The notes beneath the pieces were generated by a model. It did not search any database, was not told the origin of the DNA, and saw only the letters and a list, made by a program, of their open reading frames with translations. A stretch of 60,047 bases of DNA, the filler included, from Sluysia triapertura (lineage: Eukaryota), in the NCBI GenBank assembly GCA_046118255.1. It is 3 parts of 3 records of this genome, joined end to end, with 100 filler letters (N's around TTAATTAATTAA, not from the genome) between each part and the next. Parts side by side here need not be neighbours in the genome. Positions count along the whole stretch, not along the records: positions 46,635 to 60,047 come from JBJNIA010041467.1; 2 more parts are not named here. One strand, written 5' to 3'. Shown here piece after piece: positions 7,401 to 60,047 of this stretch (the first letter of the stretch is position 1; each line of letters begins with the position of its first letter). The position numbers and the translations under genes are program-made.

Positions 7401-9600
7401 AAAAATATGGTAACAGATTGTGTATGGTTTTGAAAACGGACGATGAGGTGAGTCGCAATATCCGCATTGAAAAAGCAAGTAATCGATATTTCTAACAAAG
7501 GTTTTAAAAATAAATGGAGTCAATGAATGTTATAGAAAATAAACACATTTTTCTAATGTTAAATGTATAAAGTTGTTAAATTATGTATTGATGAATTAAT
7601 ATGGATAAGAGCTGATAAGAATTGGAGAAGGACATCCAAGTGATTGTAAATATGATTGTCGTTAAGATGAGTTGATCTGTAATCAAATATATCTAATATA
7701 GTAGCAGTAGTAGTAGTAATGATGTGTTCGTTTTTTGATAATTCAAATTTTATATTTTTACATTCAAATACCGCGCAATATAGATTAATCGGGAGAAGAA
7801 TATTCTATCTTGATATTGTACGATAAATAAATAGATTCTGATTTTGTTTTGATTCGAATTCAGGCTACCGGATCTCAATTCAATCTCGTCCAACTGCATT
7901 ACACAGCGTGGCCTGATTATGGCGTCCCGGAACCGGAGAGTTTCATGGACTTCTATCGGACGTACGACTTTTATCGACACACATTGTGCAAGGAGTCCCC
8001 GCTGGTCATTCACTGCAGGTAATCTGTGCTAATTGTGTATTCTAGTTAGCTTATTGATATTTGTACTTGCAGTGCCGGTGCAGGACGAACTGGATCTTTG
8101 ATACTGATCAGTCTTGTACTAGATCGAATACAGAACTGCGAAGATCGAGTTCAAATTCTGGAAGTATTTCGAAAATTGAGATTCAATCGATACTGGCTCG
8201 TACAGACTCCAGTAAGTTTATATTGCGCTAACAAGTTGTAGTGTGTGTTTGTGTATGTGTGTTGTGCGAAGAATTATGTAAGTGGAAGGCGTAAAACTAA
8301 AAAATCAGACTTAAACTTAAATCAATTTCTTAATTATTTCATAGTCCTTCTTTATACATTCTATATCTTACAACGTTTATATCATGGAATTCGCAGCCTT
8401 ATTCTTAATTTTAAATCATTCAACTGTTGTAAAATTAACAAAAAATAATTATTTGAAGTGGGCGCGTGTACAATTTCAATATATTACAATTACTACCTCA
8501 TATAAATGCTTAATCACTAAACATGTGTGTAAATATAATAATGTTGGATTTAAAAAATCTTTTTCGACAATAAAACTTAATATGTTTAATTATTTTCTAC
8601 GAAATTTCGAATGTCTTTGGTTACTTTCTTAGTTGTATATATACTCACGTACTTTATATAAACTTATAATAATTATAAAGAATTAGGCTTTTAATGCGAT
8701 ATCTCTAAATTACTTTGTAATAAGTTTCCAACGTTAATTAATACAGACTTTAGTCCTCAATAATACATTAAATATCTTTACTTGTATAAACAATAACTTA
8801 AACTCTATCGTTTTACTATTCACTTAGTACTTGTTTGTGCTACCTAGAAGTCTAAGTTCGGATACTCGTTCTGATGCAGGGAATAGAAACGCAAATAAGT
8901 GTATTGAAGTTTATTTAAATTTAGAATAATCCCAACTGGATTCGATTTCTAAGTCATACTTAACAATGTTTCCTCCCTGTATAAATTAAATAAAAAGTAA
9001 AGCTTTAACAATTTATTATAATGTATCAGTAAAATAAAAAGGTATATTTAAAGTAATTTTTCTATAGAATTAACAAATTTAATTTTAATATTCAATTCCG
9101 AAAGAAGAACAATAAAAACCACTTACTATATCAATACTCAAATGTTCTTGTAGGATCAATAGAAGTCAATAGTTAATTAGCATTGTAGAATCGGTAATAA
9201 TCAGCGATGAAAAATCAATGTTTTAAATAGTCTTGTAAGATTAACAATAGTCTGCTTTTCTTTCACAACGACTTCAGAATTTTCTTCTTTTCTTATATGA
9301 GTATCAACAACTCGAATATTCTTGTAGGATTAATAGTAGTTACTTGTCTTGTATGATCGATAATAATCAGTGTTGAACAACAGACTTATAATTTTTGTCT
9401 GGGAGTTGGTCCTTTTACAGTGCGGATCGTAAATTATTTCAGATATAATTTTTATGTAATAATATTTAATTTTATAGAGTAATAATTTAATAAATGATGT
9501 TTGTATGTGATTCCAATATAATTTTTATACAGTAATATTTAATTTTGTACAGTAATAATTTTGTATAGATACATAGTCATAATATTTTTTAATAATTTTG

Positions 9601-9650
<50 letters not shown>

Positions 9651-10092
9651 AAATGATAGTTATTGCCTCTTAGTTCGGACTTGTATGTTTTACTAAATTT
9701 TAATTATATGCTGTTTATATTAAATTTGACTTTAATATGATTTTTGTCGATTAGAATGCTTTTAAAATCGAGAATGTTATTAATTTTTAATTTTATGATA
9801 GTTTTACTCAATCTCAGTTTAATATAATTTTAAATCTTATAAAATAATTTTTGTTAAAATTTAATACTAAATTGTCTTATGGAATTTTATTTAAAAATGA
9901 TTATTTTATTTCAATCTAAAACTAGAGTGTTATTTGCTATTGAATTTTGAATTTATATTAACTCTATTAAATCACATTTTAAATTGATGAAAAGCATTAT
10001 AATCTTAATGAAACAAATGATTTTATTTTTACTTTAAAAATAATTTTTATTTTAATTAAATTTAAATCAAAAATTAATGAATATTATGTTAC

Positions 10093-10123
<31 letters not shown>

Positions 10124-10745
10124 CTACTACAAAGTAAGTACTCAAAAGCGCTTAAATTCAATCATTCACTATAATATTTTTGTAACAGAAAGAACTTCGC
10201 ATGATAATATTAATATTAATACTGTAAAGCTTTTATTTCTCCTGGGTAAATAGGCCTTTTCCTTCAATAAAGATATGATTCACAAGTATCAATTATTTTT
10301 TATTCATCGAGAATGTCAAATTTCGTTGCTCCTGATTTCGTTATAGCTGCAGGAACAACTTCATTCTGAGCCAGAATTAAAAAAGGTGGGTCCAAAAGTT
10401 CAATGTTTTACAAGTAGTGTTAGGGTAATAAGAAATTGAGAATGTTTATTTTTAAAGAAAGGGATGGGAAAATAAAAGAAGTTTGATAGTATATTAAGTT
10501 AACTTAGATTGAAATTTAAAAATTACTTAATGTAGAGATAAGATTTATTCGGATGGTCAAACTTTCAATCGAGCATTAGAAGCTTATAATAATAATGATA
10601 ATAATAGTAATAATAATGATAATAATAGTAATACTTTATTATTATTTCTATTATTGTTAAGGAACAATTCATTTTCGTACATGAATTTATATTAAAGTAT
10701 CTTCAACAGCACCTGATTGGTCAAAGCTCAGTCAGTTTTGTTTGA
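1479..10745 (+). CDS. Classical protein tyrosine phosphatase, 7 exons, 359 aa if started at ATG 1479
   Basis: Exons 1479-1625, 1673-1769, 1822-1948, 3360-3690, 7864-8018, 8073-8211, 10662-10745. All introns GT-AG, phases consistent, total 1080 nt. PTP motifs occur in order: KNRYTNIKPY, YVNAS, FIASQAP, EFWRMI, QYWP, WPDYGVP, HCSAGAGRTG, LVQTPEQF. The start codon is uncertain. Confidence 0.92.
2700..3290 (+). mobile_element. Decayed mariner transposase remnant in PTP intron 3
   Basis: KKLMVNVWWSSAGVIHYDLMKPGSPITAEI and ILLHENTRPHT match mariner KVMLxVWW...LLHDNARPH motifs. Stops and frameshifts are present. Confidence 0.85.
4998..5493 (-). pseudogene. Antisense coding-like segment nested in PTP intron 4, unknown product
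   Basis: One minus-strand frame runs KLFPFQDEQFEFQ...MLNCDRNKRFTDEIMKHAALRGLNAIFRN...VLLDEFHAC...KADIPML*. Two in-frame stops could be removed by 30-36 nt GT-AG micro-introns or could be mutations. A TTTTAG acceptor precedes it. Confidence 0.35.
6660..6870 (-). mobile_element. Mariner transposase C-terminal remnant
   Basis: YFRSMSNHLSGL...WIEEFF...GIDKLSERWKKVIDCGGEY is the typical mariner C-terminus. Confidence 0.85.
10093..10200 (-). mobile_element. L2 LINE 3' fragment with microsatellite tail
   Basis: Reverse complement of the 3'UTR at 55-125, abutting (AAT)n. Confidence 0.7.
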
Positions 10746-13700
10746 TGTATTATTATGTGTTAAGATGTGTTATTCTATGTTTCAGCAAATATATGCATTT
10801 AGAATTTTTGTATTTACAGTTACAGAAGATTAATTGATGTGCATCGAAAATACACTGCACATTACAAATTGATTACTAGTTTTCATTATACAACAAGCTC
10901 TTGTGGATGAATGTGCTGCTTTGCTTAACTGTAATATGTTTCGATTAATTCTAACGACTGTTTTACTTTATTTTGCATCTTTACGATTGGTTGTATCCGG
11001 ACAGCAGTTTGAGAGATCTGATTGGTTGATTATATTTTATTAGTTGTTGCTAGATTTTGTATAAATGAGTCACTGTCGTCCATTGCCAGGTGGTAACCTC
11101 ATTTTCCGAATAATACGAATCTAGTGCTGTTGACTGTTATTTAATATCGCTAAAAAGTAATTTCCGTAACAGCATTCTTTATCTTTGCCGTTCTTACTAA
11201 ATCTGACTGCAGCCCCTCTGTGTTTTAATACACCGTAATTGATTTTTAATTTCTCGAGACTTATCTATCATTTCACTGTGGAAAACTACAGACTATTTAA
11301 TCACTATCATTTGAGCAATTATTTTAAAAATTAGTCTCAATTTTATGATGTGTTTCATTACTATTTTTAAAAATTTTATTCATTTATTGGAGCAATTGAC
11401 TGAAATGATTTTTTAATAATACTATCTCTTCTTGTTTCGAGACATGATGCACTGAAACACGATCAAATGTGTGTTTTTCAAATGAAGTCATAAAACGTGT
11501 TGTACAACCGCAGAATTTTAAATGTCCATAAGAATTCAAATAATTTAAATGTTATGTAATATTCACATTGATAATGTAAACAGAAATCAAGTAGCTCAGC
11601 ATTGTTCAATAACTAGTTTGAATGAAGATTCAAAAATTTTTGATTGTCTTCCAACAAATCACATTAATATTTTAACGCTCTATTTCATTAATATCGATAA
11701 ATATACCAGAATGTATTCCAATTTGGAATTGTTTCCAAATACCGAAGATAGAGCAAATGTTTCACAATTAACCTAGATGTATTTACTGAAATTTCAATTG
11801 TGTTCAATATCCAGTATTCAATAAATTCAGTACATCAACTCATGGCAACTGAGTTTATTAAAGAATCATAACATATTTAACAGAATTCCCAAGTTAAGTA
11901 ACATATTCTTTAATCATTTAATAGCCCTTCATACATTATATACCTCACAACAGTTACAATCAAGCTATGTATATTGTGGTGGTTCAGCCAATCACAGCGA
12001 TCATATTACATCAATAACAACCATAGACACGAAAAAATAACATGTTTCACTTACACCGTCCCATAACATTACATCGAATCCCATACTTGCACCATCACAT
12101 TTCAGCTATAGTTACAAGATCATACCAAATTAAGTCTTTTTTTTCTAATAAAATTAAATTTTAAGTCAAGCTTTACAATGGAAATAATCCCCATCGTCAT
12201 CTTATCATTGTTGTAGCTCCACACCTTTTCTCATATTTTATGTTTTATTATGCAGTATCATAATATGTCAAATTATATATTGAATTTATGCAATAATTTT
12301 ACGTTTTATTAATAAATTAAAGTAAAGAAACAATTTATTTAAATTAAGTAAAACTGGTCAAAAAGTCGACCTTGATGCTATAAGTAAAATTTTACTAAAC
12401 TTTAGAATGTTTTAAAATGTTACGGGAAAAGAATTTTAAAACGATGCAAGGGCAAGATTTCAAAATGAAGATTAACTTGGACATAATGGACTCAATAAAA
12501 ACAGCACTACCATCATTTAGTGACTGGATCGTCTACCACGTGATTCTAAATGCTTTAGATTGTTGGCATGACGAGTCACATGCAAGACGTTTTAAATGCA
12601 ATGTGCTATAGATGAAAGAGAGAGGTCAATTCATACTGGTGCATGGCAATTTGAAGTGCAGTAGATGCGTAGCAGCCAATGATATAAAGTTTTCACTAAT
12701 TATCGCTTACTTGGTTGAATCCAGATATAATGTCGAACCTAGGGTTCACAATTCAGATTATTTACTACTCTCACTACTCCAAAATTTATAATTAATTTAG
12801 AACTATGTATCAGGAAATTTTGTTTATTTTTTTGTTTTTATATATGATAGTCTGAAATGCGAAAAATGGACCATTGTTACAGATAAATTAAGTCGTGATA
12901 TTATTATTATTATTATTAAAGTGGCACGGTCAATCATGTTACGCGTAGATATTGTGTTTTGCTGTGGCGTTGAGTGTTTAGAATTTGTTATTTATTACAA
13001 CTCGATATTATTATCTCGATCGGCTTAAACCTTTACGATTTCAATAGTCAGTATATCAAGTCTAAAATTGCCGTAATCTTCTTTTATAATGTCTAATTAT
13101 TATAGCAAATTTAAGTTTCTTGAAAATAAAATCAAAACTAATACAATAATGTACTGTTAAATAAAAATCGAAATAGAATTTATTATTATTAATATGAGTC
13201 TTCACTAAATAAAACTAAATGACAAAAATATAAAGTAATGAATGGAGTCTTTCCCTAAATGATATTAAAATACCTTAAAAATGAGAATAAATTTAATATT
13301 TTAAAATAAAATAACGAAGGGGGTTTCCCACTAAACAATAATAAAATACCTTTAAAAAATTTAACAACTTTAAAATTACAAATTTAATATTTTTAAAAAG
13401 AAACGATTATTTTAATAATAAATTAATAAAATTAAAGACCTTACTCTAAGCATGGATTTTCATATCTATCATCATCATTGTCATGGTTGTTATCTCTCAT
13501 CATCCAATCAATTCAGAATTGAAATAATAAATTCATTTACTTTTATAAATGTGGATGAATATCAAAGTTTCAATAATAAATTATACAGAATTCGTAAAGT
13601 TAAGAATAAAATATCATCATCCACGACATATCCACACATATATAATAGTAATTAGCTACAACAGTGCCAGTTCACATTTCGTTGGACCAAACTGTGATGA

Positions 13701-46634: not shown

Positions 46635-46712
<78 letters not shown>

Positions 46713-48270
46713 GACGGAACGACTTGGACTCGATTACGCGATCTCAATTGAAAAAGTATTTTAACAAAATATGTATTTATAAAGTTAAGCACAGTGTGAT
46801 GATAGAATCACTACTTAGGTCAAATCATCGGGGGATTCCAGTAATATACTATAGGCGAGCACATAATACGGTATCAAAGTTTTTATATACAACTTTTCTA
46901 AATGTGAAATATTATTGGTCAAAAACTATCTTACTCAATTGTTGTTATTGTGTCAACATTCACATTTTTATTAATTTTGTAATTTATCAGATTCTTCGGA
47001 AACAACCGTGAATTCATAATAACACTTTAATGATTTTTGAAGTAGAGTTATTGATTATAAGTAAATAATAAACGTGTCAACAAACAATTCACAAATGTAT
47101 CTCGTTTTGTTTTATTCAAAAGACGTTTTCAAAGTTTAGCAGAATACGTTGTATTTCTTGTTTAAATTTTACAAATTGTATATGACTTAATACCTTGTTA
47201 GATATTATTAAATGAAAAAATGAAGTATTTCTGACTTATTTCACATAAACTTAAAATGAATAGCACTTATACAAACCAATAACTATGAGATATTTTTTTA
47301 CGAAGTGAATTAATCCTTTCAACCATAATTATCATAAAACTTTTTCAGTTATTATATTATTAATTATTAATTAAATAAGTTTAAAATTTAACCTACAAAA
47401 ATAATACATCAAAAATCAAATTTTCATATACTCGATTTTTATTGGTTAAAAATAATATTTCAAAAAACCAACTAATATGCACAAGTTTTATATTAAATTA
47501 TTAAATATATACAGAAAATCAATAAAAATTAAAACAAAAATAACATAATGAAGCCATCCAATAGAATCTATGAATTACATGAAATAACCAATAACAAATG
47601 AACAAACATACGCAAAAAAATAAGAATTTTTCAAAAATTAATATAAATAAAACTAAAAATTCTGAATTTTTAAATTACGTATCAAAGATTAATATTTGAA
47701 ATATTTTTTCTTATTATTTTTTATAAAAGCTGAAATTTATTTTTAATTAATTAATTTTCATCATTGAAAAAAATTAGCATCTGTTTTTTTTGTAATTTAT
47801 CAATTAAAACTTGAAATAAATTTCACATAAAAATCTCTGAATTTTATGAACAATATAAATATTGATTAAATAATGACTAATCAAAAATGAGCAATTACTC
47901 GACGATTTTTCCTTGTAATTTTTTCTTTAGTTTATTTAAGGAAAAATCAGGAAAAAAATGAAAATAAAAATCTATTTTATCACGTTTGAAATAACAATAA
48001 GTATACAAAGTATAATAGCATACAAACGAAACAAAACAAGGAAGCATATACAAATCAAAAAGCAGAACAATTAAAATAAGTAATTATTCTAATTATTTTA
48101 GCTACTTATGTTTGTAAACAATATATTTCTTATTAAAAATATATTTTACAATTAATGAGCATAGATTATATCATCTATTACTAATAAAAACTACAAACCT
48201 GACTGGATGGTTAAACAAAAAAAAATTAGAATTCAAAATTTAATTACATAATAAATTTTTAATGTGTTAA

Positions 48271-48984
48271 TTAATTTTTATGATCATTTTTGAGTAACTG
48301 GATTGATTGAAGTAATTTTTGACAAAGAGGTTCATCTTGAATACCAGCTTTTAAAATATCTTCACGTGTGGCTATTAAAAGGGTGTCTGTGTTACGACAC
48401 AGTGCGGAACGAATAAGTAATTGGGAGATATTTTCATCCAATCGCAACGAATTGACCCACTCGATTGGATGAATTGGCTTTTGAAGAACAACATATCCCT
48501 AAATTTAATTTTATTATTATTATGTCGTTAAAATGAAATTAAGTTTTCATATAACTGTTTAATTAAACGATTTTCAGATTAATCTTTATTATCTTAATAA
48601 TAAATAAACGTAATTTTTACTTTATACTTCAATTAAGTTCGACAAAACATATTATTATCAAAAAAAAGAAATACAAAAATGCAAAATATCTGAACAAATA
48701 TATTTCTGATTTAAAAATACACAAATTAGCATAACTAACTATATCTTGTTTGTCCAGCATTTCCACAGTTTCTTGTGTGATTTCGTTCTGACTTTCTCTA
48801 TAATTATAAAAATATAACATTTACAAATAATACTTTTCCAAACAATATTAATTTAAATGAGTATAGCTAACTTAAGCAACTTAATGTTGTCATTGTAAGA
48901 CTTATTCTTTCTCAACGGAAGACATTCTCGCTAAGCAGCAAGTGAAATTGAAATTGAAATAAAACATAAAACAACAACAACAAC

Positions 48985-49029
<45 letters not shown>

Positions 49030-52000
49030 TCTTTTTGTACATTTTTCTGCAAGAATCCCACTGATTTACGAATATTTCGTTTATTTCTTCCATGATCCAA
49101 GAGTACAATCCACAAATGCATGTAACACATAACATTCAAGAATATCTTATATTGTGTCTATTCTTCTTGAGTCAGATCAGCACAGTTTTGCATATTTTCC
49201 ATCATATCAATAAAAAATTTGATAATAATGCACAAAGGTTTGAATAAATGGACTTCTACTGTCCAATTTGGGATTCAACTTTGGCATCAACGTTTAACTC
49301 ACCTGGACCAGATTCATTGTGCTGTGGTTTTCCTAACACTTAATCTAAGGTAAAATATTTTTGAGCATGTTGTGGTTTCAGCAAACGTCTGATGACTTGA
49401 AGAAGGCGTTTCTGTAATTGTGTAAGATAATATTTTATCTAAATAGCAATGCTTCTTAATTAGGGTTTTGTCAAATGTAATTAAATGTTACAAAAACACT
49501 TCTTAATTTAACAAAAAATTCTAATTCTAATGAAACTGTAAACTCAGGTAAGTTTATTCAAAAACCACAAAAAGATTTAAAATTTACAAATCACGTATAA
49601 TATAAAGAATAGACAGAAAATTAATTAAATTTTACAATTAAAACTCGATGGTCTTTAATTGTTTTTGTTATAAAATAAATTTAAGTGGATTTTGCCCCTA
49701 AATATATCAGGGAAACTTAATGTAACTTTAAAAATAAAGTTAAGCAGATTTTCGCAATTAGTATCACCTTAGTAAAAATAACCTACCATAAACATAGAAC
49801 GGAAAGCTGGTTCTGATCGAATAATATTGCCACCAGAATTGACTGTTAATTGTTTGATTGTCAATCGATAAACCAAAAATTTTCAACCCAAAAATAAATG
49901 ATAAAAGAACAATATGGCTACTAAATTGTATAATTCAAAATGGTGATTCTCATTAAACTGATGTTAGTTTATATAACAGTCATCAACCAATAAGAATAGA
50001 TGGAATGTTCCAGAACATTCTAAAATCTTCTATTCTATTATTAGAAGTGAATTTTATTTTTTCGAAAAATAAATATTTTTAAAGTGATTTTAAAGAATTT
50101 AAAATGATTTTAGAGGGCTGTGATGGCAACCTATAAATGTTAAGGATGTGAACACACACGAAAAGTGTTTCTTTTTCAAATCCCACAATGATTGCTTGAA
50201 TGTCGAATACTCTCTGTTTTATATGACTGATCTTGTTTGCATTAAACCAATCTGAGTGGACTTTTAGTTCATTTTGTCATTATTGATACTGTATTTTTCA
50301 TCATTGTCAACATAAAGTTGCGAAATTTAGATGATCATATTTGTAAACCAACACAACGGTCTACGTGATTACTTTTAATCATCTGAGTAAGTATTAGAGG
50401 TTATAAAACCCTTCTTTCTATGAGAAATATTAAATTGAATGCAATAATTTATTTTAATTTTGAATACAATCCATAATTTGTATAATTCTCAAAAAGTGTG
50501 TGTAGCAAGTGCACCGTATCAGTATAATTCAGTCTATATCATCAATAATTGCTTAAATGACAACAAAAAATATGAAAAATAAAATCAATGAAACAGAATA
50601 TCTCTTTAATTTACCAATAAATAAACAAAATAATTCGATTATTAACCCCTTAACGTTCAATTTATTTTTCAAAAAAACGTCCAAAAAAACTCATTTTTTA
50701 TTGCTGCATTAATATTTTAGTGTAAGCGTCTTATAACTAGTAGTTGGCACCTCTGTAACTAACGCAAGTTAATTCTAATACCAAACAACTTAATATATTA
50801 ATCAAATTAACTCGAGTTAATTCGAGTGTGCGAGTTAAGGGGTTAAAATTATTAACACGGTAACTAACACTTTCATTGATGTGCATGGCTTTACACATCT
50901 TTCTGTAGACAAATGTTGTTCTTGCTCTTCATGATGTTTCTTCTGGTCGTTCATTGCTTGGACATAATTTCCTCCAACAATTATATTGTTTAGCTTTTGT
51001 GTTGACTGCGACGGCTGTAAAGTACATTGTGTAGCACCACTTAGAACTGAATCGATTGGTCGAAAATCTTCTTGACATGCAACCTCATTGCTTGAATTAG
51101 AACAAACAATAGTATCTCGATTATAGGGAGTCTCAGATTCATCATGATTAAGAGCAAAACTTGCTGGTGAAAAGGCTTGATTACTAGCTGAATTGAATTT
51201 AAAAATTAAACAGATAAAATTATAAATTAGAACTTACTGTCACAAGAGGATGCGGAAGAATGCATTTGGGTCAGATGTTCCTGGGAAATATTTGACAAAG
51301 CAACGCTTGAGAAGCAAGGATTGCAATTAGGTGGAGCTATAGACGAAGAAGGATGCGTAGAAAAATGTGTGGGATCACTAGACTGCACTATACCTGATGC
51401 TGAAGCTGCATTATATGATGATGAAGAAGACGAGGCAAATGACAGTGGGTTACTGTGATCTTGACGAGTCCGCACAGGACGAAGAGGAGCAGTCGATGGT
51501 GGAGGTGTTGAAGGGTGAACTGATTGTGGAGGTCGACGAGTTGTGGACACATGGATGTTTCGAGGTGGTAGCAAAGGAGGCACAGGTTCGGTTAAGTAAT
51601 TATTATCTGGCTCATATGATTGGTGTAATGAAGGAAGGTGATCTGAAAAATTGCTGAGATCAACACGAGCATCTAAATGTCTTCTTTGATTGGACACTCC
51701 GTGCCGAATGGCTTCATGAGTTATGTAACTTTCATTGTTGACCATCATCATTTCTTTCGTATCATTATCATCACTGAAATGTTCACCCTTCGTTGAATTG
51801 CTATCTGGATCTGTATTCTCGTTATTTTTATCCAAAAAAAGATTGCTTTGAAAATGATTACAAGTATGTTCCGATTTAATGGTAGCACTATTGTCACATG
51901 ACAATTTGGTGCTTTTTAACAAACGATTTGTAGCTAACGTTTTCGAATTGTTTAAGTCTTCGGAAATAGTTTGGTTCTGTTGTAAATAAAAGTATTATTA

Positions 52001-55000
52001 CATCATAATTATAATTTGTTTTTTAAATATACAATAAATATAATAAATATAATAAATATAATCAAATTTACCGACTGTTTTTGTAAACATATTGAGAAAA
52101 AAACCTCTCAAAAAATTGGAAGAAGCTGAAATTCAAACTTATACGTTGCATTTGTTCATCAGCTGTTTATTTTTAACAAAATACATGCTTTATGATTACT
52201 ATATTTTATTTAGAGGAAAATTTGAAAGAGTATGCACCCACTGATTGTAATACAACGAAAAAGAAGGCAAAAGAAAATTAAGCAAAATCTACAAAAATAA
52301 ATGCACAATTAAGAAATGGATTTAATAGTTTAACAGTCGGAGAGTTTCCGTTTCTAATGAAAACAATGTTAAAATTAGGAATCGTCAAGAATCGAATATA
52401 TTTATAGATTTATTGAAAGAGATAAATAGCCTTGATTGGTCAAAAGATCGAGCCCTATTTAATGGCATGATGACATTAGACTACATAATACACAAAGAAT
52501 TTCTTCATCTTTCTCCACACTCACCACTTTTTCCGCAATTTGGATAAATTTTTTAATAGAAAAATTCTTTTCCGCTAGAGTTCTATTTTAGAGTTATGTA
52601 AGAATTGTGTGGAACGACATGTTTTTTGAATTTTAGAATGGTATTTATTTTGTTTATTTTATTTAAACTGTAAACATTAAAGTTTAAAACATTTGAAATG
52701 TAACCATAATATTTTAGGTTATCCTTGAGTATAATAAAATATTATATTTAAAACAAAAAAATAATATAATAAAATAATATAATATAAAAGAAATTACTTC
52801 TTCTTTTTCGTGACGTAAAACTCTCATACTATTGGATACAAAACTGTTGAAATTGTTTTCATTTGTTAAAGTTGACGAATCATCAATTGGTAAACGACGA
52901 AACATCCATTCATTTTCTATGTGATTTTTGACTCGTGTCGAATTTTGACTGATGCTATGATTCAAACAGGCACACTTACGAAGGCTTACTAGAGATTCTA
53001 AAGCTGCGTCGATTGGTCTAAATGCAGAGATCTGAAATAAAACGTAAAAGTAATTCAAATTATATCAGAAAACTATTTTCCAATTACGTTTGTTATTATC
53101 AATCATGTTTACTTTTATTTCTTAGATTTATTTTGCTGTGGTTTATTCTTAACTCTTAACCTACGACAAAATAAAATTGAGCAGGGTCCGGTTACAGTAA
53201 GAATGTTACAACTAGTAGTTGGCACTTCTGTAACTAACACAAGTTAATTCTAATGTCAAAAAAATTAATATATTAATTAAATTAGAACAAACCTCAATTT
53301 ATGATCAAAACCCTGAGGGCCTTTGATCTTACAACTTTATGTATGAATTTAAAAAGTTCCCCTCATTAGATCGAGGCTGCAAAATATCCTTATTTAGATT
53401 TATGTTTCAAATTAAACGTCCTTACAATTAATAAAACTTACCAAACGATTAAGAAATAATTAAAGTAAATCCGAAGTATTCTGCGCCAAAATCGTAGAAC
53501 AATAATGTAGATACTTGCTGAATGACTGAAAATCTACTAATAATTGCTAATTGTGTGATAATTGCGAATTATAATAACTAGTTGTTATTGATTTGTAATT
53601 GAAATTGTAAAAATTGCCTGACTAATTAAAATTGAAATCGAAATTGTTATTGTAATAAATATTGAGCTGATGCTAGTATATATACTGGTCATCAGCCAAT
53701 AGAAATCGATGGAATATTCCATAACATTCTAGAAGCTTCTATTCTATTTTTAGAAGCTTATTTTCTTTTTTGGAAAATAAATGCTTTTTACTTGTTTGGA
53801 ATCTTTTAAATATTTTTAAATGACTTAAAATTTTTAATGTTTTTGATAATTTTAAAGGGTTGTGTGATGGCAAATACCACCGGCTTGACAACCTGCTGCT
53901 GAAGTTGATGAATAAAATAATTTTAGATATTTGTAGTTCTCTTTTTTCTACAAATTTCAACCTAGATGATCTAATAAAAGCAAAAATTTAAAAGTATTTT
54001 TAAAGTCAGTAAAGCTATTGTTACAATATATTAAAAGATCCCTCATCATACAAAATAAATATAAAATTTTGTTACGAATTTTGTACATAAAATCCTTTTT
54101 ATTGCAAAAATTTGACAATTTATAAGTATACTATTTTGTGTATACTATTTTATATTTATTCGTATTTAAGTCAGCTTACATAGTATCGATATTAATTGAT
54201 TTACGTCAATGTAATATCCAATAACTCTCCAATAATATTGAATTCAAAAAATAATTCAAATAAACGCCATTAGAAATAACCAATTAAAGTTCAGTTTTTT
54301 TATATAACATTTGAACATATTTTCTTTTCAAATATAACAAATAATTAATCAGCACACAAGTGAGATTTGACATTAAGATAATTTCAAATATGAAATTATT
54401 TGGAAATTATTATCTGAATTGGAATTTTTTAAAATCAAATGGTAGTAATTTATTGTTTAATTTTGTTAGGTTGTCATTATAAATGTTTTAAAATTATTTA
54501 TAAATAATTGTCTAAAAACACTTAAAAAATAGAGGAAAAATCAATTTTTAGCTTTAATATTGTAAGAACCCCGAGATATTGATGGGACATTTTCTACTTA
54601 TTTTGAAAACAATTAGATCGAATATTGCAACAGGATTTAGATCATACAATAATATTTACGTTTTATTTTATTTTCTATTTTGTATCATAATCTAGTATAC
54701 ACGTACATTTTAAAAAAATATGAGCCTTTTCTTTATTGTGCTATTTAAAATTAAGACAAAATTATCAGGAACGTACTAAACGTATTTTTAAGTGAATATA
54801 GTTAACCCATTCGCTGCCAAGGACGAGTATACTCGTCCTACTTTAAATGTATTATAACATGCAAGCTTTTGAATAAGCAAATTTTTTTTGCCACAAACAT
54901 AATATAAATATGTAAAAAACTTGAAAAATAATACAAATAAATTTTTTTACAAAAATAATACTTTATTTCTTATAGAGAATAATCTTTCACGCAAAAATCA

Positions 55001-58000
55001 ACAATAACGCTCAAAATATAAATGGCAATGGGGATGATTTCATATAATTTGGGCTTGGCAGCGAATGGGTTAACTTATCAAGTTACAGAAACACCAACTA
55101 ATGGTTTAAGACGTTTACTGTAACCGGACTCTACTCATATTTTTATTTTGCCGTAGGTTTAGTTTTAAGAAAACCACAGCAATTTTATTGGTAATTTAAT
55201 AGTATTTCAAGAACAGTTTGTTTATAAAATTTCAATAACAAAGTACAGCAATATAATAATTAATAATTAATACAAATTTAACGTAGAACATAGTATCTCA
55301 GAAGATACAAAGATATTAATATATCTTTTGGTAAATCTGCATTAATTGTGGATTTTAAAAGTGGAAATTATGAAATTGAAGCTATATTTAGAATAAAGAA
55401 CTGAGAATATTTTAAAACGTTGTGAATAAGAAAGTGTACCGATTGCAATTAAATTGGTTTCTATGGTTACAAAATAAAGAAGAATTTTTAACACAAAAAT
55501 AAAAGATAAGGATAATAAGTGATTGTACAATGATTATTAAATGATTCATCAAAATGTACTTTTCCAAAACTATTAATTTCAAATTTAAAGTGTACCTTAT
55601 ATTAAATAAATCTTATTTAATTAGCATTATAAAAATGATACTTAGTATTTGTTTCTAACAGATTATATGAGTTACTAAATTAAAAAATGTCATACTTTTT
55701 AATTACTGACAATTTTTATTAGATAATAAACTTACTTCGTCAGATGTATGATTCATGAAAGAACTTGGAGTGAATTGAGATAACTTTAATGAATCCAAGT
55801 TAGAAAATATGTCGAGATTATTTCTGGCAAACGACAGTTCTTCATTTAAGGTATACGTAGAGGTAAAAAAATCTGAAGATTGAATTATTATTAATATTAT
55901 TATTATTATCAATTATTACTATTAATTATTTTTATTAATAAAATCGATAATTATTAATTAAAACATTATACCCAATAATTTGTAAATTAATCATGAATTA
56001 ATCATAAAATTATAATAAACCTGTAATTTGTTGACATTGTTTCACGTCGTAATTGATTAAGTCCAAGCAAGCAATACTTAAGTAACCTCGAATGATAGCA
56101 GTACCAATGCAGCATCCCTGATGATCTATGTCAATGGTAAAACAGTTGGACTTGTTGTAACTGAACTGACTAAGAGGAAGTGGAAAATAAGCTAAATACA
56201 ATGTTGATCATTATTAAAAATATTTTTAAAACATTGATTTTTATATTGTCACACCAATAAAATCCCAGTCACATTTAAAAACACTTTTTCCATTAAATAA
56301 TCGAACTGTTTACTGGATTTTGATGGATTGTCAGTGATACAGATGCAATAGAAAACAGAGGTCCGAAAAATAACAAAATAACTTCTTTTCTCTATTATGT
56401 TATTTAAATAATAATGTTAGTAGGTCAAATGTTAAAGAATTCTGAGAATCTATTATCATTTCTATATGACGATGATGAAAAAAGTTAGACAAATATTTTA
56501 TTTAGACTTATTAAAAATTATTTTTTGGTAACTAAATTGAACTGGAAAATAGCGAATACAAAAAAAACACAAATTTTATCAATTTGTCTCTATTATTTAT
56601 TATTTTCTTTATTATTATTATTATTATTATTAATATTATTATTATTATTATTAATATTATTATTATTATTAATATTATTATTATTATAATAAAAACTAAC
56701 CTTATTCCTTAATGACTCAACATATTTAGAGCCCTTGATAGTTACTATAGTAACCTGGCATTCTTCTAATTCCACATTAATTTCATCAATACCTGTAATT
56801 ATCCATGTTTCTCTTGCAGAATGAGGAATCAAACGAAATCTTAAGTCCTTGAAAGCATCAACAACTTTTTGCAACATCTGTTCCAGTGTCCATTCGTTAT
56901 TTGCAATCTCCGATATTTCTGTTATTGCTTGTTTGTGATACAGTACCTGTCAATAGTTAGTATTATTTTAATATTTATATGAATAAAAACAATTGACATT
57001 TATTTGTTTAATTTTAATTTAGTTTTATATTTCAGTACAAAGTAATTGAAATATCCAATACCTTATTAAATAACTCTCCAATTGCACATTATTAGTTGTA
57101 ACACAGCACACAAAGAGAAACTTTTTCAAACAATAAACATCAAATCACACAAAACAGTATAAAAGAAATAAAGATTAGAATACACAGATTCAATCAACAA
57201 AATCAGTAAGTAAAACATCTCTTAACACCTACAGATCCAACAGTGTATTAATGTTGTCGCTAATTGCTGACCATCCATTTTCGCATCCTGTGACATGATG
57301 TTCTTGTTATACCTACATCTTTACTTAGCGAATGGGTCGTGAATTTACACTGACTTATTTTTAACTAGTTAAATTTTTAAAATTCGTAAAATATTGCCGG
57401 ATGTTTACGCGCCGCGGCAAAATAAACATGTGGACGTTTACGTGTTAAGTTACTATATTAATTTATTCAAATTAATTTACTTATTCAAAATCAACAAATG
57501 CTTAAATATAAAATACAACTTTTATAAAAATTGCACTTAAATGATCTATCTTAAAAGAAATCTCAAATTATTTTATTCGGAAATTTCAAATGTTCCAATT
57601 CAATCATGTCTTTCTATCATAAGAATTATGTAGCGATAACTAAGTTAAATTTCAAATGACAAGTAAGACCTGAGCATAACTTAAAACCTTCTGCGACTGA
57701 CTCAAATTATAAGAAGTTACAAGACCGTACGAAGTTCTATAAGCATCCTCAATTACTCTTGTCGTAAATTGCTCTCAACTAAAATGGTGACGGGAGTGGA
57801 ATTTAAACCCACACCCTCAAATCACTATATATCGTATATTGGTATATCTTGGTATTTATCACTTATATCAATTTCATTTTCTCATATTTTATCAAACAGC
57901 TGAACTCATTATTCATTCATTGATAACTAATAATAAATAAGCAGCAAGACTAATTCTCAAAGTGGGAAGTAGATCTCATGTAATACTTTATCTTAAGGAA

Positions 58001-58282
58001 TTACATTAGTTACCTATAAAAGCAAGGATAGAATTCAAGAGAGTAGAAATAACAATAATAATAGTAATAAAATATGAATAAAAATAAAAGGATATATACA
58101 GAAAGCCACATAATAAAAAGGAAAATAAACAACAATCCAAATCTTACAACGAGAATAATATTCATTAGGACTGTGTTCATGTTCTATATGAATTATTAGT
58201 GGTTTGATATATTGTAGATTGTTTAAAATTTGTTTATGTAAAATGTTGTTTTGGTGTTTATTTGTGATTGTCATGAGTTGAT
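48271..58282 (-). CDS. 3' part of a gene with a Pro-rich region and C-terminal SAM domain, probably a SHIP/INPPL1-like inositol 5-phosphatase
   Basis: Phase-consistent GT-AG chain: 58282-58148, 56191-56021, 55872-55736, 53031-52798, 51976-51238, 51187-50869, 48797-48740, 48498-48271. The last exon (EWVNSLRL...TREDILKAGIQDEPLCQKLLQSIQLLK) is a SAM domain. The first two exons (KQILNNLQYIKPLIIHIE; FTIDIDHQGCCIGTAIIRGYLSI) resemble the end of the SHIP C2 domain as remembered. The 58 kb exon and the SHIP identity are the least certain parts. Confidence 0.7.
50002..50031. promoter_or_regulatory. Heat-shock element array inside a dispersed repeat (49955-50132)
   Basis: gGAAt gTTCc aGAAc aTTCt aAAAt cTTCt: five of six alternating nGAAn units are perfect. 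CCAAT and a TATA-like TATATAAA (minus strand) lie within about 35 nt. Confidence 0.6.
50646..50842. mobile_element. piggyBac-type MITE
   Basis: TTAA|CCCCTTAAC ... GTTAAGGGG|TTAA. Confidence 0.75.
53711..53740. promoter_or_regulatory. Heat-shock element array inside the second repeat copy (53665-53875)
   Basis: gGAAt aTTCc aTAAc aTTCt aGAAg cTTCt, with the same CCAAT/TATATA context as the 50002 copy. Confidence 0.6.
54806..55069. mobile_element. piggyBac-type MITE, 264 bp
   Basis: TTAA TSD, perfect 16-bp TIR CCCATTCGCTGCCAAG, and subterminal palindrome AGGACGAGTATACTCGTCCT. Confidence 0.9.
56701..56946 (-). CDS. Axonemal dynein heavy chain exon (DHC_N2 region, DNAH14/DNAH6-like)
   Basis: CAG acceptor, GTTAGT donor, phase 0-0, 82 open codons: VLYHKQAITEISEIANNEWTLEQMLQKVVDAF...GIDEINVELEECQVTIVTIKGSKYV. 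Confidence 0.85.
57785..57818 (-). other. tRNA-Leu-like 3' fragment ending in CCA
   Basis: Minus strand GAGGGTGTGGGTTTAAATTCCACTCCCGTCACCA resembles a tRNA-Leu T arm, acceptor strand and CCA. No 5' half. Confidence 0.4.
57900..58040 (+). mobile_element. L2 LINE ORF2 fragment
   Basis: AARLILKVGSRSHVILYLKELH*LPIKARIEFK. Confidence 0.7.
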
Positions 58283-58628
58283 CTGGAGTTCCAATTTATT
58301 ACTATCAAATACAAATTAATATTCACTCTAATTCAATAAAACAAATTTAGTTTAAACACTCAATCAATCAGAACGATCTTATCTATAATTATCTAATTAC
58401 ATTAGCTAATTAGATAAATTCAAATTCAAATTTAATAAAATACTCATTTTAACCAATAAATCACTCAACCAATCAGAACGACATATACCAATTCAAATTA
58501 AGTACGCGCGAGTAAACAATAAACCCGGTACTCCGAACCTCTCCCTCGAGGAAGTGGGAACTGGTTTAATGCGGATATTTTTATCTATTATTATTTTTCT
58601 ATATAACTAACCGCACTGACCAGGTGAA

Positions 58629-58757
58629 CCGTATTTTCCGGAATAAAGCACCTTAAAAAAAGTTTTTTAGTTAAATTTTAGGAGGTGCGCATTATAATCC
58701 GGAAAATAATAGTCGTATATTCTTTTAGGATGTGCCTTATGGTCCGAAAAATACCTT
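58629..58757. mobile_element. pogo/Tc2-type MITE remnant
   Basis: CCGTATTTTCCGGA with inverted TCCGGAAAATA and TCCGAAAAATAC copies. Confidence 0.5.
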
Positions 58758-59130
58758 AATTTCATTAAACTTTTTGGAAATTAATATTCTAAGCTCATTT
58801 CCATTAGTATCCCGCTTCGAATAACCAAATTTTTTGCACTTAAAAAATACTTTCTAGAAGATTAAGAAAAACAAATAATTCAGTAGATATTTAATTGTAT
58901 ACCGCACGCTTATCTCCTTATCTGCCAGTGCGCGATAAATGTAAATTCTAGCATTATCCTATTTCAAAACAGATGGCTTTAATATTTCTCAGAAAAACCG
59001 TAAAATTTTCCCAATTTCAGTTTATATTATATAACGTATTTTAATTAATATTATTCTAACTTTTATTTAATTGATTGCAATAATTATTTAACAGATAGAA
59101 AAACACTATAATAAATTATTTATTAATCAC

Positions 59131-59191
<61 letters not shown>

Positions 59192-59203
59192 CTTTATAAT
59201 TAC

Positions 59204-59394
59204 TTTACTCAGTAGTAAATCTCCTATTGTAAAATTAGTATTGGATATTATAGAAATTCCAATCATTCGTTCAATTTTTAACCAATGTCGTTGACATAAA
59301 TTTGGATTTCTTAAAGCAACTATAACTGGCAAACATCCTTGACATTGAAGTACAGCCATTTTGACAGCAGGTAATATACCATTAGTTGGCAGTC
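59204..59394 (-). CDS. Axonemal dynein heavy chain exon (DHC_N2), directly upstream in the protein of the 56946 exon
   Basis: GLPTNGILPAVK...LPVIVALRNPNLCQRHWLKIE...FTIGDLL has the dynein LPxxxxLRNPxLxxRHW motif. It ends in phase 0 and joins the next dynein exon. Confidence 0.85.
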
Positions 59395-59974
59395 CTAAAT
59401 AACAGATAGATAAATGAATATATTCAATATATCTTCTCCAAATCAAATAGAATAAACGACCATTTCATTTTCATTGCTCAAGTAATTCCAATGTTAAATA
59501 AAAAATAATTAAGTTAGAAATTTCTGTATATAAAATATTAAATAAAAGAAAAATTTAATGCTAGAATAAAGTCTAATTATTGACTGAGATATTAACATTA
59601 CGAAGTTTTTCATTGGACCGATTGTTTCAAAATAAAACTGTTAATTATTGCTTAGTAAAACCTGAGACTCTTACGAAACATAAATTTTAAATAAATAATC
59701 ATATTAACAACCAATAAAAAATATTTTCGATACGTAATGCTTGTGAAAGTAAAATTGACCTTTGCATTATTAATCATTGATGTATCAAAAGTGTTGAGAA
59801 ACCATAACATAAAACTAGTCCAGAAGTGTCAAATGAAGGATAAGGTGACTTCAATGCAAGGATTCATATTTTTCTCAGGAAATTTTCAGTCAATAATTTT
59901 TGAACATTTTGGCTCCATTCTGCTAATATATTAAAAGTGACTATTATTCAGTTTATAATAAAATATATAATCTT

Positions 59975-59975
<1 letters not shown>

Positions 59976-60047
<72 letters not shown>
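59976..60047. repeat. (AAT)n microsatellite at contig end
   Basis: Pure trinucleotide run to the end of the window. Confidence 0.95.

Follow-up and report, generated by a model that had tools for sequence, protein, structure and literature searches.

A candidate SAM-domain gene on the strand of two dynein heavy chain exons in Sluysia triapertura, possibly nested within a dynein intron

Introduction

Same-strand genes account for 29% of the nested genes of Drosophila, and 73% of these consist of a single exon (PMC3814207). In Drosophila, multi-exon nested genes on the host strand are the disfavoured class, an inner gene with several introns on that strand being thought to be selected against owing to mis-splicing (PMC3814207). 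In human, 75 nested parallel pairs have been described, together with 30 embedded parallel and 33 partial parallel pairs (PMC2330155). Such nested pairs combine a large host with a small, unrelated, fast-evolving gene that lies on the host's strand within one long intron and has to be spliced over (PMC3814207, PMC2330155). In the embedded and partial classes, same-strand genes share more than one intron, and an interleaved locus would belong there (PMC2330155).

The locus studied here occupies positions 46635-60047 (JBJNIA010041467.1, Sluysia triapertura, GCA_046118255.1) of a 60,047-nucleotide stretch of DNA, the window; these positions are referred to below as the piece. According to the original prediction, it contains two unrelated genes on one strand, a dynein heavy chain gene and a gene of the SHIP type with a SAM domain, interleaved exon by exon. 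The two unrelated minus-strand genes are borne out by our analysis. Interleaving is unproven rather than refuted by the sequence, and the exon that it requires shows no homology and has background composition.

Results

Locus and sequence continuity

The piece ends on both sides in (TAA)n arrays and holds five further arrays of this kind. A public run search for the locus returned one matching run only (X1), which is DNA and is kept as Logan contigs. These contigs break at each microsatellite (55879-55941, 56591-56700 and 59119-59198). The array at 56591-56700, covered by repeat families D4, D5 and I1-I25, alone connects the stretch with the dynein exons to that with the SAM gene; no contig of run X1 bridges it, and contigs end on either side. 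An Rfam scan and a tRNA scan of the piece were both empty.

Table 1. Features of the locus, listed in order of transcription. A slash marks the exon border.
Feature	Position	Strand	Phases, splice sites and remarks
Dynein heavy chain exon, DNAH6-like	59394-59204	-	phase 1 in, 0 out; acceptor ttatttag/G, donor AAA/gtaatt
(TAA)n microsatellite	59119-59198	none	directly past first dynein donor
Disputed open frame ("58 kb SHIP-like exon")	58282-58148	-	open frame, AG...GT borders; phase 1 in, 1 out
Next dynein heavy chain exon	56946-56701	-	phase 0 in, 0 out; acceptor ttgacag/G, donor AAG/gttagt
Imperfect AAT/ATT microsatellite	56591-56700	none	directly past dynein donor; 110 bp
Possible SAM-gene exon, coding or 5' untranslated	56191-56021	-	phase 1 in, 1 out
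Probable SAM-gene exon	55872-55736	-	donor GAA/GTAAGT, strong
SAM-gene exon A	53031-52798	-	phase 0 in, 0 out; T-rich acceptor, GTAATT donor
SAM-gene exon B	51976-51238	-	phase 0 in, 1 out; donor A/GTAAGT
SAM-gene exon C	51187-50871	-	phase 1 in, 0 out; phase fits exon B
SAM-gene last exon	48498-48274	-	phase 0 in; SAM domain, TAA stop

Two consecutive dynein exons

The first dynein exon matched Pfam family DHC_N2 (PF08393) at positions 64-121 (E 1e-7). Taken alone, it reached 31.7 bits, just short of the 31.9 cut-off. It also gave single-stretch matches to PDB sequences (DNAH6 933-981, E 3e-6), and its G+C content is 31%, with flanks at 19% and 9%. The second exon, with 34% G+C, matched DHC_N2 at positions 128-204 (E 4e-15, 56 bits) and, in the PDB, the Chlamydomonas chain 8glv_Fm at 1066-1143 (E 1e-9) and DNAH6 at 1001-1078. 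Because the matches adjoin, both on DHC_N2 (64-121 and 128-204) and on DNAH6 (933-981 and 1002-1078), the exons are consecutive in the protein. Open frames persist in both, their four splice sites are all canonical, and the LRNP..RHW motif is conserved. On this sequence evidence they are real exons joined in phase 0, and the original prediction was correct in their borders, AG/GT sites, joining and order.

The best match was to the single-headed inner-arm axonemal dynein heavy chains of the DNAH6 type, DNAH7, DNAH1 and the outer-arm chains being weaker. Of the ~4150 residues of DNAH6, the counterparts of ~145 lie in the piece, and the motor domain lies outside it. As had been reported for the next 10 kb, no further dynein exon was seen in 46635-56700, and the six AAA+ modules, the stalk and the C-terminal domain, which would be expected beyond 46635, were likewise absent there. 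Depth in the contigs of run X1 was 8.8 and 9.3 for the two exons, against 13-16 nearby, which makes them single-copy by depth. The second exon found no match within its length band in a word-indexed protein collection.

Two other assignments were rejected. The TAL-effector matches of the first exon contained 0 significant stretches and were sums of weak repeat matches. A ciliate genetic code was considered as an account of the "introns", and the sequence past both dynein donors proved to be microsatellite, not DHC_N2.

Four 3' exons of a second gene

The four 3' exons of the SAM gene follow one another in compatible phases (0/0, 0/1, 1/0, 0/stop). Their G+C content is 35-41%, against 24% for the background, and their codon scores range from +0.20 to +0.29 per codon (null mean -0.36), the true frame always scoring best. 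In leave-one-out scoring, exon A reached +0.23 per codon, again with the true frame ahead. Exon B is rich in serine and proline (PVPPLLPP...), with 41% G+C and a score of +0.29 per codon; exon C scored +0.27 per codon. Judged by phase and composition, this second gene on the same strand is real.

In the word-indexed collection, the proteins 0.55-1.75 times as long as exon B included no homologue of it. Since the searches with the SAM exon, exon B and the second dynein exon found no homologue, the protein sets seem to lack Sluysia triapertura and its close relatives.

A divergent SAM domain and the SHIP assignment

The last exon encodes a divergent SAM domain, a compact five-helix bundle of ~65 residues, as indicated by three independent lines that are each weak. 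Among PDB sequences, the SHIP2 SAM (5zrx) was the best match at E 0.11, followed by the SAMs of ANKS1B and EphB2; SAM domains made up three of the five matches. With a low-confidence model of the exon (pLDDT 56), Foldseek returned SAM domains in eight of the ten best matches (TM 0.47-0.57), and the SHIP2 SAM showed 27-29% identity in structure alignments. Atlas recognition was 2597, and nine of the ten best family matches belonged to one clan, those listed being SAM families. Pfam gave no SAM match for this exon. Its sole match among 1.84 billion representative proteins (P0001, a 4331-residue repeat protein) was rejected because the score is the sum of many 22-residue chance matches.

SHIP2 (INPPL1) may resemble the predicted protein in that a proline-rich stretch precedes a C-terminal SAM domain, an arrangement which, among SHIP1 and SHIP2, we take to be that of SHIP2 only. 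Proline-rich regions and C-terminal SAM domains are also combined in other protein families. In contrast to SHIP2, no SH2, 5-phosphatase, C2 or NPxY match was detected in the piece, and the likeness is that of a generic SAM fold only. None of the exons at 58282-58148, 56191-56021, 55872-55736 and 53031-52798 showed similarity to SHIP, Pfam at E<=10 returning nothing relevant for them and the PDB sequences giving no match at E<=10. For the SHIP C2 domain, phmmer against all PDB chain sequences, a set that includes a SHIP2 chain (the SHIP2 SAM), gave no SHIP match at E<=10, and Pfam gave none at E<=10. The 5-phosphatase motifs GDxNYR, SDHxP and WxGDxN were absent from the six frames of the piece, and the candidate exons had no Pfam match. 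The 5-phosphatase catalytic domain could be located beyond the piece. Neither an SH2 motif of the FLVR type nor an NPxY motif occurred in any exon frame. Since SH2, 5-phosphatase and NPxY motifs were not found, a long upstream part of the SAM gene is not forced.

Sequence comparison thus does not support a SHIP identity of the SAM gene. The earlier label, including a C2 domain for 58282-58148 and 56191-56021, has no Pfam or PDB match behind it, the SHIP2 SAM at E 0.11 being the only trace. What does hold for these two exons is the formal description, namely open frames, AG...GT borders and phases 1/1.

Candidate 5' exons of the SAM gene

The exon at 55872-55736 scored +0.10 per codon, above 60 of 60 null ORFs, and its G+C content is 32% between flanks of 11% and 17%; no homology was found for it. 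An in-frame ATG at 55756, seven codons ahead of the donor at 55736, joins exon A in phase 0. Together, this ATG and the GTAAGT donor give a complete ORF lying entirely downstream of 56701, which would let the SAM gene begin after both dynein exons. The claim that its upstream part must extend beyond or among the dynein exons therefore does not follow.

The candidate at 56191-56021 has a G+C content of 37%, which ranks it with the highest 1.7% of background windows, and AT-rich flanks. Just one of its six frames is open, and by codon score this frame, the one used in the original prediction, ranks worst of three. Atlas recognition was 1149, under the level of known families, so that the peptide is not recognised as protein-like; Pfam and PDB gave no match. 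The open frame lacks an ATG and enters in phase 1, so that 56191-56021, if coding, would need another coding exon upstream of it. An exon-like G+C island with a single open frame at this position speaks against nesting.

The disputed exon at 58282-58148

Exon-by-exon interleaving depends on 58282-58148 and on no other exon. This stretch contains an ATG at 58274 and had no Pfam and no PDB match. Its G+C content of 25% equals the background (41% of background windows are equal or higher), and its codon score is -0.07 per codon, with 7 of 60 null ORFs scoring higher. Moreover, the acceptor tract is purine-rich and weak, and a 1-bp insertion follows 58226, inside the exon, in one X1 contig (depth 15.4 of 30.5). 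Open frames of 79-124 codons also occur in parts of the piece that are not exons. Given such comparable frames elsewhere and the background G+C content, an open frame of this kind is within chance. From these sequence properties, 58282-58148 is probably a chance open frame within the preceding dynein intron.

Discussion

The best explanation of the locus, which we hold with moderate confidence, is that the SAM gene may be nested on the same strand within a dynein intron spanning 10 kb or more, and not interleaved with the dynein gene exon by exon. The host would be a DNAH6-type gene for an axonemal inner-arm dynein heavy chain, its two exons covering residues ~930-1080 of ~4150, and the intron past 56701 would extend over at least 10 kb and run off the piece. 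The inner gene would be independent and fast-evolving, with five or six exons. It would begin, probably, in 55872-55736 at the ATG at 55756, with 56191-56021 perhaps as a leader exon, and would continue through exons A, B and C to the last exon. Its predicted product has ~510 residues and is serine/proline-rich, with the SAM domain at its C-terminus. The dynein pre-mRNA would be spliced over the inner exons, reading through the 3' end of the inner gene, and the latter would have a transcription start of its own within the dynein intron. We infer both the position of this start and the further dynein exons beyond 46635. Compared with the Drosophila nested pairs, the inner gene here would have at least four introns, and its placement within an intron is our inference because the downstream host exon lies outside the piece.

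Of the three wrong joins closest at hand, those from the dynein donor at 56701 to the acceptors at 56191 and 55872 are out of frame, and because of this their products would likely be degraded. The proposal that each transcript skips the exons of the other gene can be kept for dynein, which would pass over at least four SAM-gene exons if the assembly is right, whereas skipping by the SAM transcript needs 58282-58148.

True interleaving, or partial overlap on the same strand, is unlikely. The SAM gene would then start upstream of the second dynein exon, at the ATG at 58274 or beyond 60047, and each transcript would skip at least one foreign exon. We would equally be surprised to find the first coding exon of the SAM gene between consecutive dynein exons, both pre-mRNAs passing over good splice sites that belong to the other. 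Such a layout could work by promoter-coupled exon choice, or by trans-splicing if spliced leaders are used. In its favour, 58282-58148, 56191-56021 and 55872-55736 join one another and exon A in frame, and the codon scores of the candidate exons lie in the upper tail of the null distribution. The island at 56191-56021 is exon-like, and its only open frame enters in phase 1. The cross-joins with dynein are out of frame, as would fit a locus where mis-splicing can be tolerated because its products decay. However, the exons were picked to fit, so their phase agreement is not independent evidence, and the composition, acceptor, missing homology and half-depth frameshifting insertion of 58282-58148, as well as the poor frame and unrecognised peptide of 56191-56021, weigh against it. 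Relative to the embedded parallel class, the sole exon that would qualify this locus, 58282-58148, is unsupported. If true, interleaving would offer a compact test case for the separation of exon sets by overlapping same-strand transcription units.

An assembly artefact is quite improbable; the contig would then be chimeric, its join lying within the 110-bp microsatellite, and the SAM gene would not neighbour the dynein exons in the genome. Arrays bound the piece and recur inside it, all X1 contigs stop at them, none spanning 56591-56700, and the dynein reading ends exactly at that array. Against a misjoin, the two dynein exons keep their order and orientation across the array at 59119-59198, which argues that this join is right and that the arrays are not generally misjoined; both sides of the suspected array are alike in depth and composition, and no positive sign of a breakpoint was seen.

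It is very improbable that the two dynein exons are a relic, that is, a fragment left by partial duplication upstream of the SAM gene or in its 5' region, with no working dynein gene. The DHC_N2 match stops after 204 of 403 positions and 10 kb follow downstream with no further dynein exon, but the reading frames, the splice sites and the LRNP..RHW motif are intact. Since depth is not raised, there is no recent twin, and an old relic should be decayed.

Hardly credible, finally, is a single transcription unit with alternative 3' ends, in which a join of 56701 to 53031 fuses a truncated dynein tail to the Ser/Pro-rich region and SAM: this join, with phase 0 on both sides, keeps the frame and was missed by the original prediction, whose exclusion of in-frame cross-joins holds for the three joins it named, but one in three random joins keeps the frame, the linker domain would be interrupted mid-way, the stronger acceptors 56191 and 55872 intervene out of frame, and no dynein is known to have a SAM tail.

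For annotation, the SAM gene should not be named SHIP on present evidence. Should the genes indeed be nested, this would be an ordinary case of a minority layout that is already known, and its one notable feature would be an inner gene with several introns on the strand of its host.

Coding features of the piece

The part of the window taken from JBJNIA010041467.1 (46635-60047, hereafter the piece) comprises 13.4 kb at ~25% G+C, with no N. Every coding feature detected in it lies on the minus strand. Both ends of the piece fall inside a (TAA)n array and five more such arrays are internal. A very AT-rich sequence dense in microsatellites, together with an axonemal dynein, suggests a ciliated eukaryote whose introns are long.

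Exons and repeats mapped in the piece
Feature	Position	Strand	Characteristics
Dynein exon 1	59394-59204	-	acceptor ttatttag, donor gtaatt; phase 1 in, 0 out
Dynein exon 2	56946-56701	-	acceptor ttgacag, donor gttagt; phase 0 in, 0 out
SAM-gene exon A	53031-52798	-	T-rich acceptor, GT donor; phase 0/0
SAM-gene exon B	51976-51238	-	T-rich acceptor, GT donor; phase 0/1
SAM-gene exon C	51187-50871	-	T-rich acceptor, GT donor; phase 1/0
SAM-gene last exon	48498-48274	-	T-rich acceptor; phase 0/stop; predicted divergent SAM domain
TAA/ATT microsatellites	46635-46711, 48975-49030, 55884-55916, 56591-56700, 59119-59198, 59966-60047		spacing ~2 kb
Dispersed direct repeat pair	50717-50809 + 53192-53284		93 nt, 86% identity; SAM-gene introns
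Dispersed direct repeat pair	49952-50081 + 53661-53790		130 nt, 80% identity; SAM-gene introns

The two dynein exons were found where the original prediction had placed them. Exon 1 ends and exon 2 begins in phase 0, and the join 59204>56946 therefore reads ...DLLLSK/VLYHKQ.... In Pfam DHC_N2, exon 1 aligns with positions 64-121 (E 1e-7) and exon 2 with 128-204 (E 4e-15), so they are consecutive in the protein. Among solved structures, the top single-stretch matches were DNAH6 (933-981 for exon 1, 1002-1078 for exon 2) and a Chlamydomonas axonemal chain (1000-1059 and 1066-1143), with weaker matches to DNAH7, DNAH1 and outer-arm chains. Since the phases join and both DHC_N2 and DNAH6 are matched, the dynein identity is correct; the gene encodes a DNAH6-type inner-arm axonemal dynein, of which the piece holds approximately residues 930-1080. 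As originally noted, no further dynein exon is visible in the next 10 kb: neither an open frame continuing DHC_N2 nor a W.YL or LEPIF-type motif was detected in 46635-56700. For both dynein exons, an array starts at most 10 nt past the donor.

The phase chain is unbroken across the four 3' exons of the SAM-domain gene, which have 35-41% G+C vs 23.8% in the remainder of the piece. Coding potential was assayed by leave-one-out codon log-odds, with 60 stop-free frames of at least 40 codons from non-exon sequence as the null (mean -0.36, SD 0.21, maximum +0.05). The four exons scored +0.20 to +0.29 per codon, the true frame exceeding both other frames in each case. The last exon gave no Pfam match and five matches among PDB sequences, headed by the SHIP2 SAM (E 0.11) and including ANKS1B and EphB2 SAMs. 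Its single-sequence AlphaFold model was poor (pLDDT 56), yet the SAM helix pattern was visible, and 8 of the 10 best Foldseek matches to this model were SAM domains (SHIP2 at 29% identity). ESM Atlas recognised the peptide (recognition 2597), nine of its ten best family matches falling in one clan and those listed being SAM families. Sequence and model together indicate that this exon encodes a divergent SAM domain.

Against 1.84 billion representative proteins, the last exon had a single match, P0001, a 4331-residue repeat protein with 0 significant stretches. It was rejected as spurious, which leaves no relative in that set. TAL effectors, which ranked above the dynein chains for dynein exon 1, likewise had 0 significant stretches and were discarded as sums of weak repeat matches. 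In both false positives, a good score for the whole sequence is the sum of numerous repeat matches, each below threshold. A protein search with exon B, covering proteins 0.55- to 1.75-fold its length, returned no relatives.

Proposed upstream exons and SHIP identity

Three further exons (58282-58148, 56191-56021 and 55872-55736) had been proposed upstream. Their AG...GT borders and phases are all present, but the phase agreement carries no independent weight because the exons had been picked to fit. The 55872-55736 segment looks real: its codon score (+0.10) is higher than all null frames, at 32% G+C it stands above both flanks (11% and 17%), and it ends at a GTAAGT donor. The status of 56191-56021 is ambiguous. 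It has 37% G+C (top 1.7% of background windows) and the sole open frame among six; this frame ranks worst of three by codon usage and its peptide is unrecognised by the Atlas (recognition 1149). The 58282-58148 segment looks like a chance open frame. Its 25% G+C is matched or exceeded by 41% of background windows, its codon score is -0.07 (7 of 60 null frames higher), a purine-rich tract precedes its acceptor AG, and its frame extends 37 codons beyond the proposed donor; non-exon sequence elsewhere in the piece has open frames of 79-124 codons. One contig of X1, the only public run found with the locus (a DNA run, kept as Logan contigs; no RNA run has it), carries an extra base behind 58226, within this segment (depth 15.4 of 30.5). 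Such a half-depth frameshift, from an allele or second copy, is unexpected for a start-codon exon.

The assignment to SHIP was not supported. The only traits in its favour are a PVPPLLPP stretch and the resemblance of the SAM domain. At E<=10, the peptides of these three segments and of exon A had no relevant match in Pfam and no SHIP chain among all PDB sequences; 5-phosphatase, SH2 and NPxY motifs were absent in all six frames. The proposed C2 alignment was not reproduced.

Repeats

Summed X1 contig depth is ~8,000-13,000 at 54648-55247, ~1,300 at 57248-57447, ~4,700 at 57848-58047 and ~870 at 58248-58447, where unique sequence has ~14. All four are dispersed repeats of high copy number and lack long ORFs. 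The stretches at 55.0-55.5 and 57.4-58.1 kb are probably related families, since many X1 contigs join them. Both direct-repeat pairs are probably short non-autonomous elements. A local duplication at 58332-58481 consists of ~105-130 nt GATCGTTCTGATTGRTTGAGTG... units; as one X1 contig lacks 129 nt there (joint 58332>58462), this is a length polymorphism or copy variant.

Arrangement of the two genes

The SAM gene had been thought to begin beyond or among the dynein exons. However, an ATG at 55756 lies seven codons upstream of the 55736 donor, from which splicing to exon 53031 is in phase 0; a complete ORF (~510 codons, counted exon by exon) therefore lies entirely downstream of 56701. The most likely reading, with moderate confidence, is a same-strand pair with the SAM-domain gene nested within a dynein intron, which would measure at least 10 kb.

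True interleaving, through 58282-58148 or an exon beyond 60047, is unlikely. A misjoin at 56591-56700 is rather more doubtful: X1 contigs (unique depth ~13-15) stop at 55879-55941, 56591-56700 and 59119-59198, none of them bridging the dynein and SAM-gene parts, but the join at the 59.1 kb array is favoured by the proper order of the dynein exons on its two sides. That the dynein is a relic is very improbable. Depth shows no rise over its exons (8.8 and 9.3), which counts against a recent duplicated fragment. All cross-joins had been described as out of frame; this fails for 56701>53031, where donor and acceptor are both in phase 0, so that the sequence formally permits a dynein-tail/SAM fusion ORF. 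A fusion isoform using this compatible pair is barely conceivable.

The same-strand host/nested layout is already known, though in the minority. Of the nested genes of Drosophila, 29% share their host's strand, and most of these are single-exon (PMC3814207). Human pairs number 75 in the nested parallel class and 30 in the embedded parallel class (PMC2330155).
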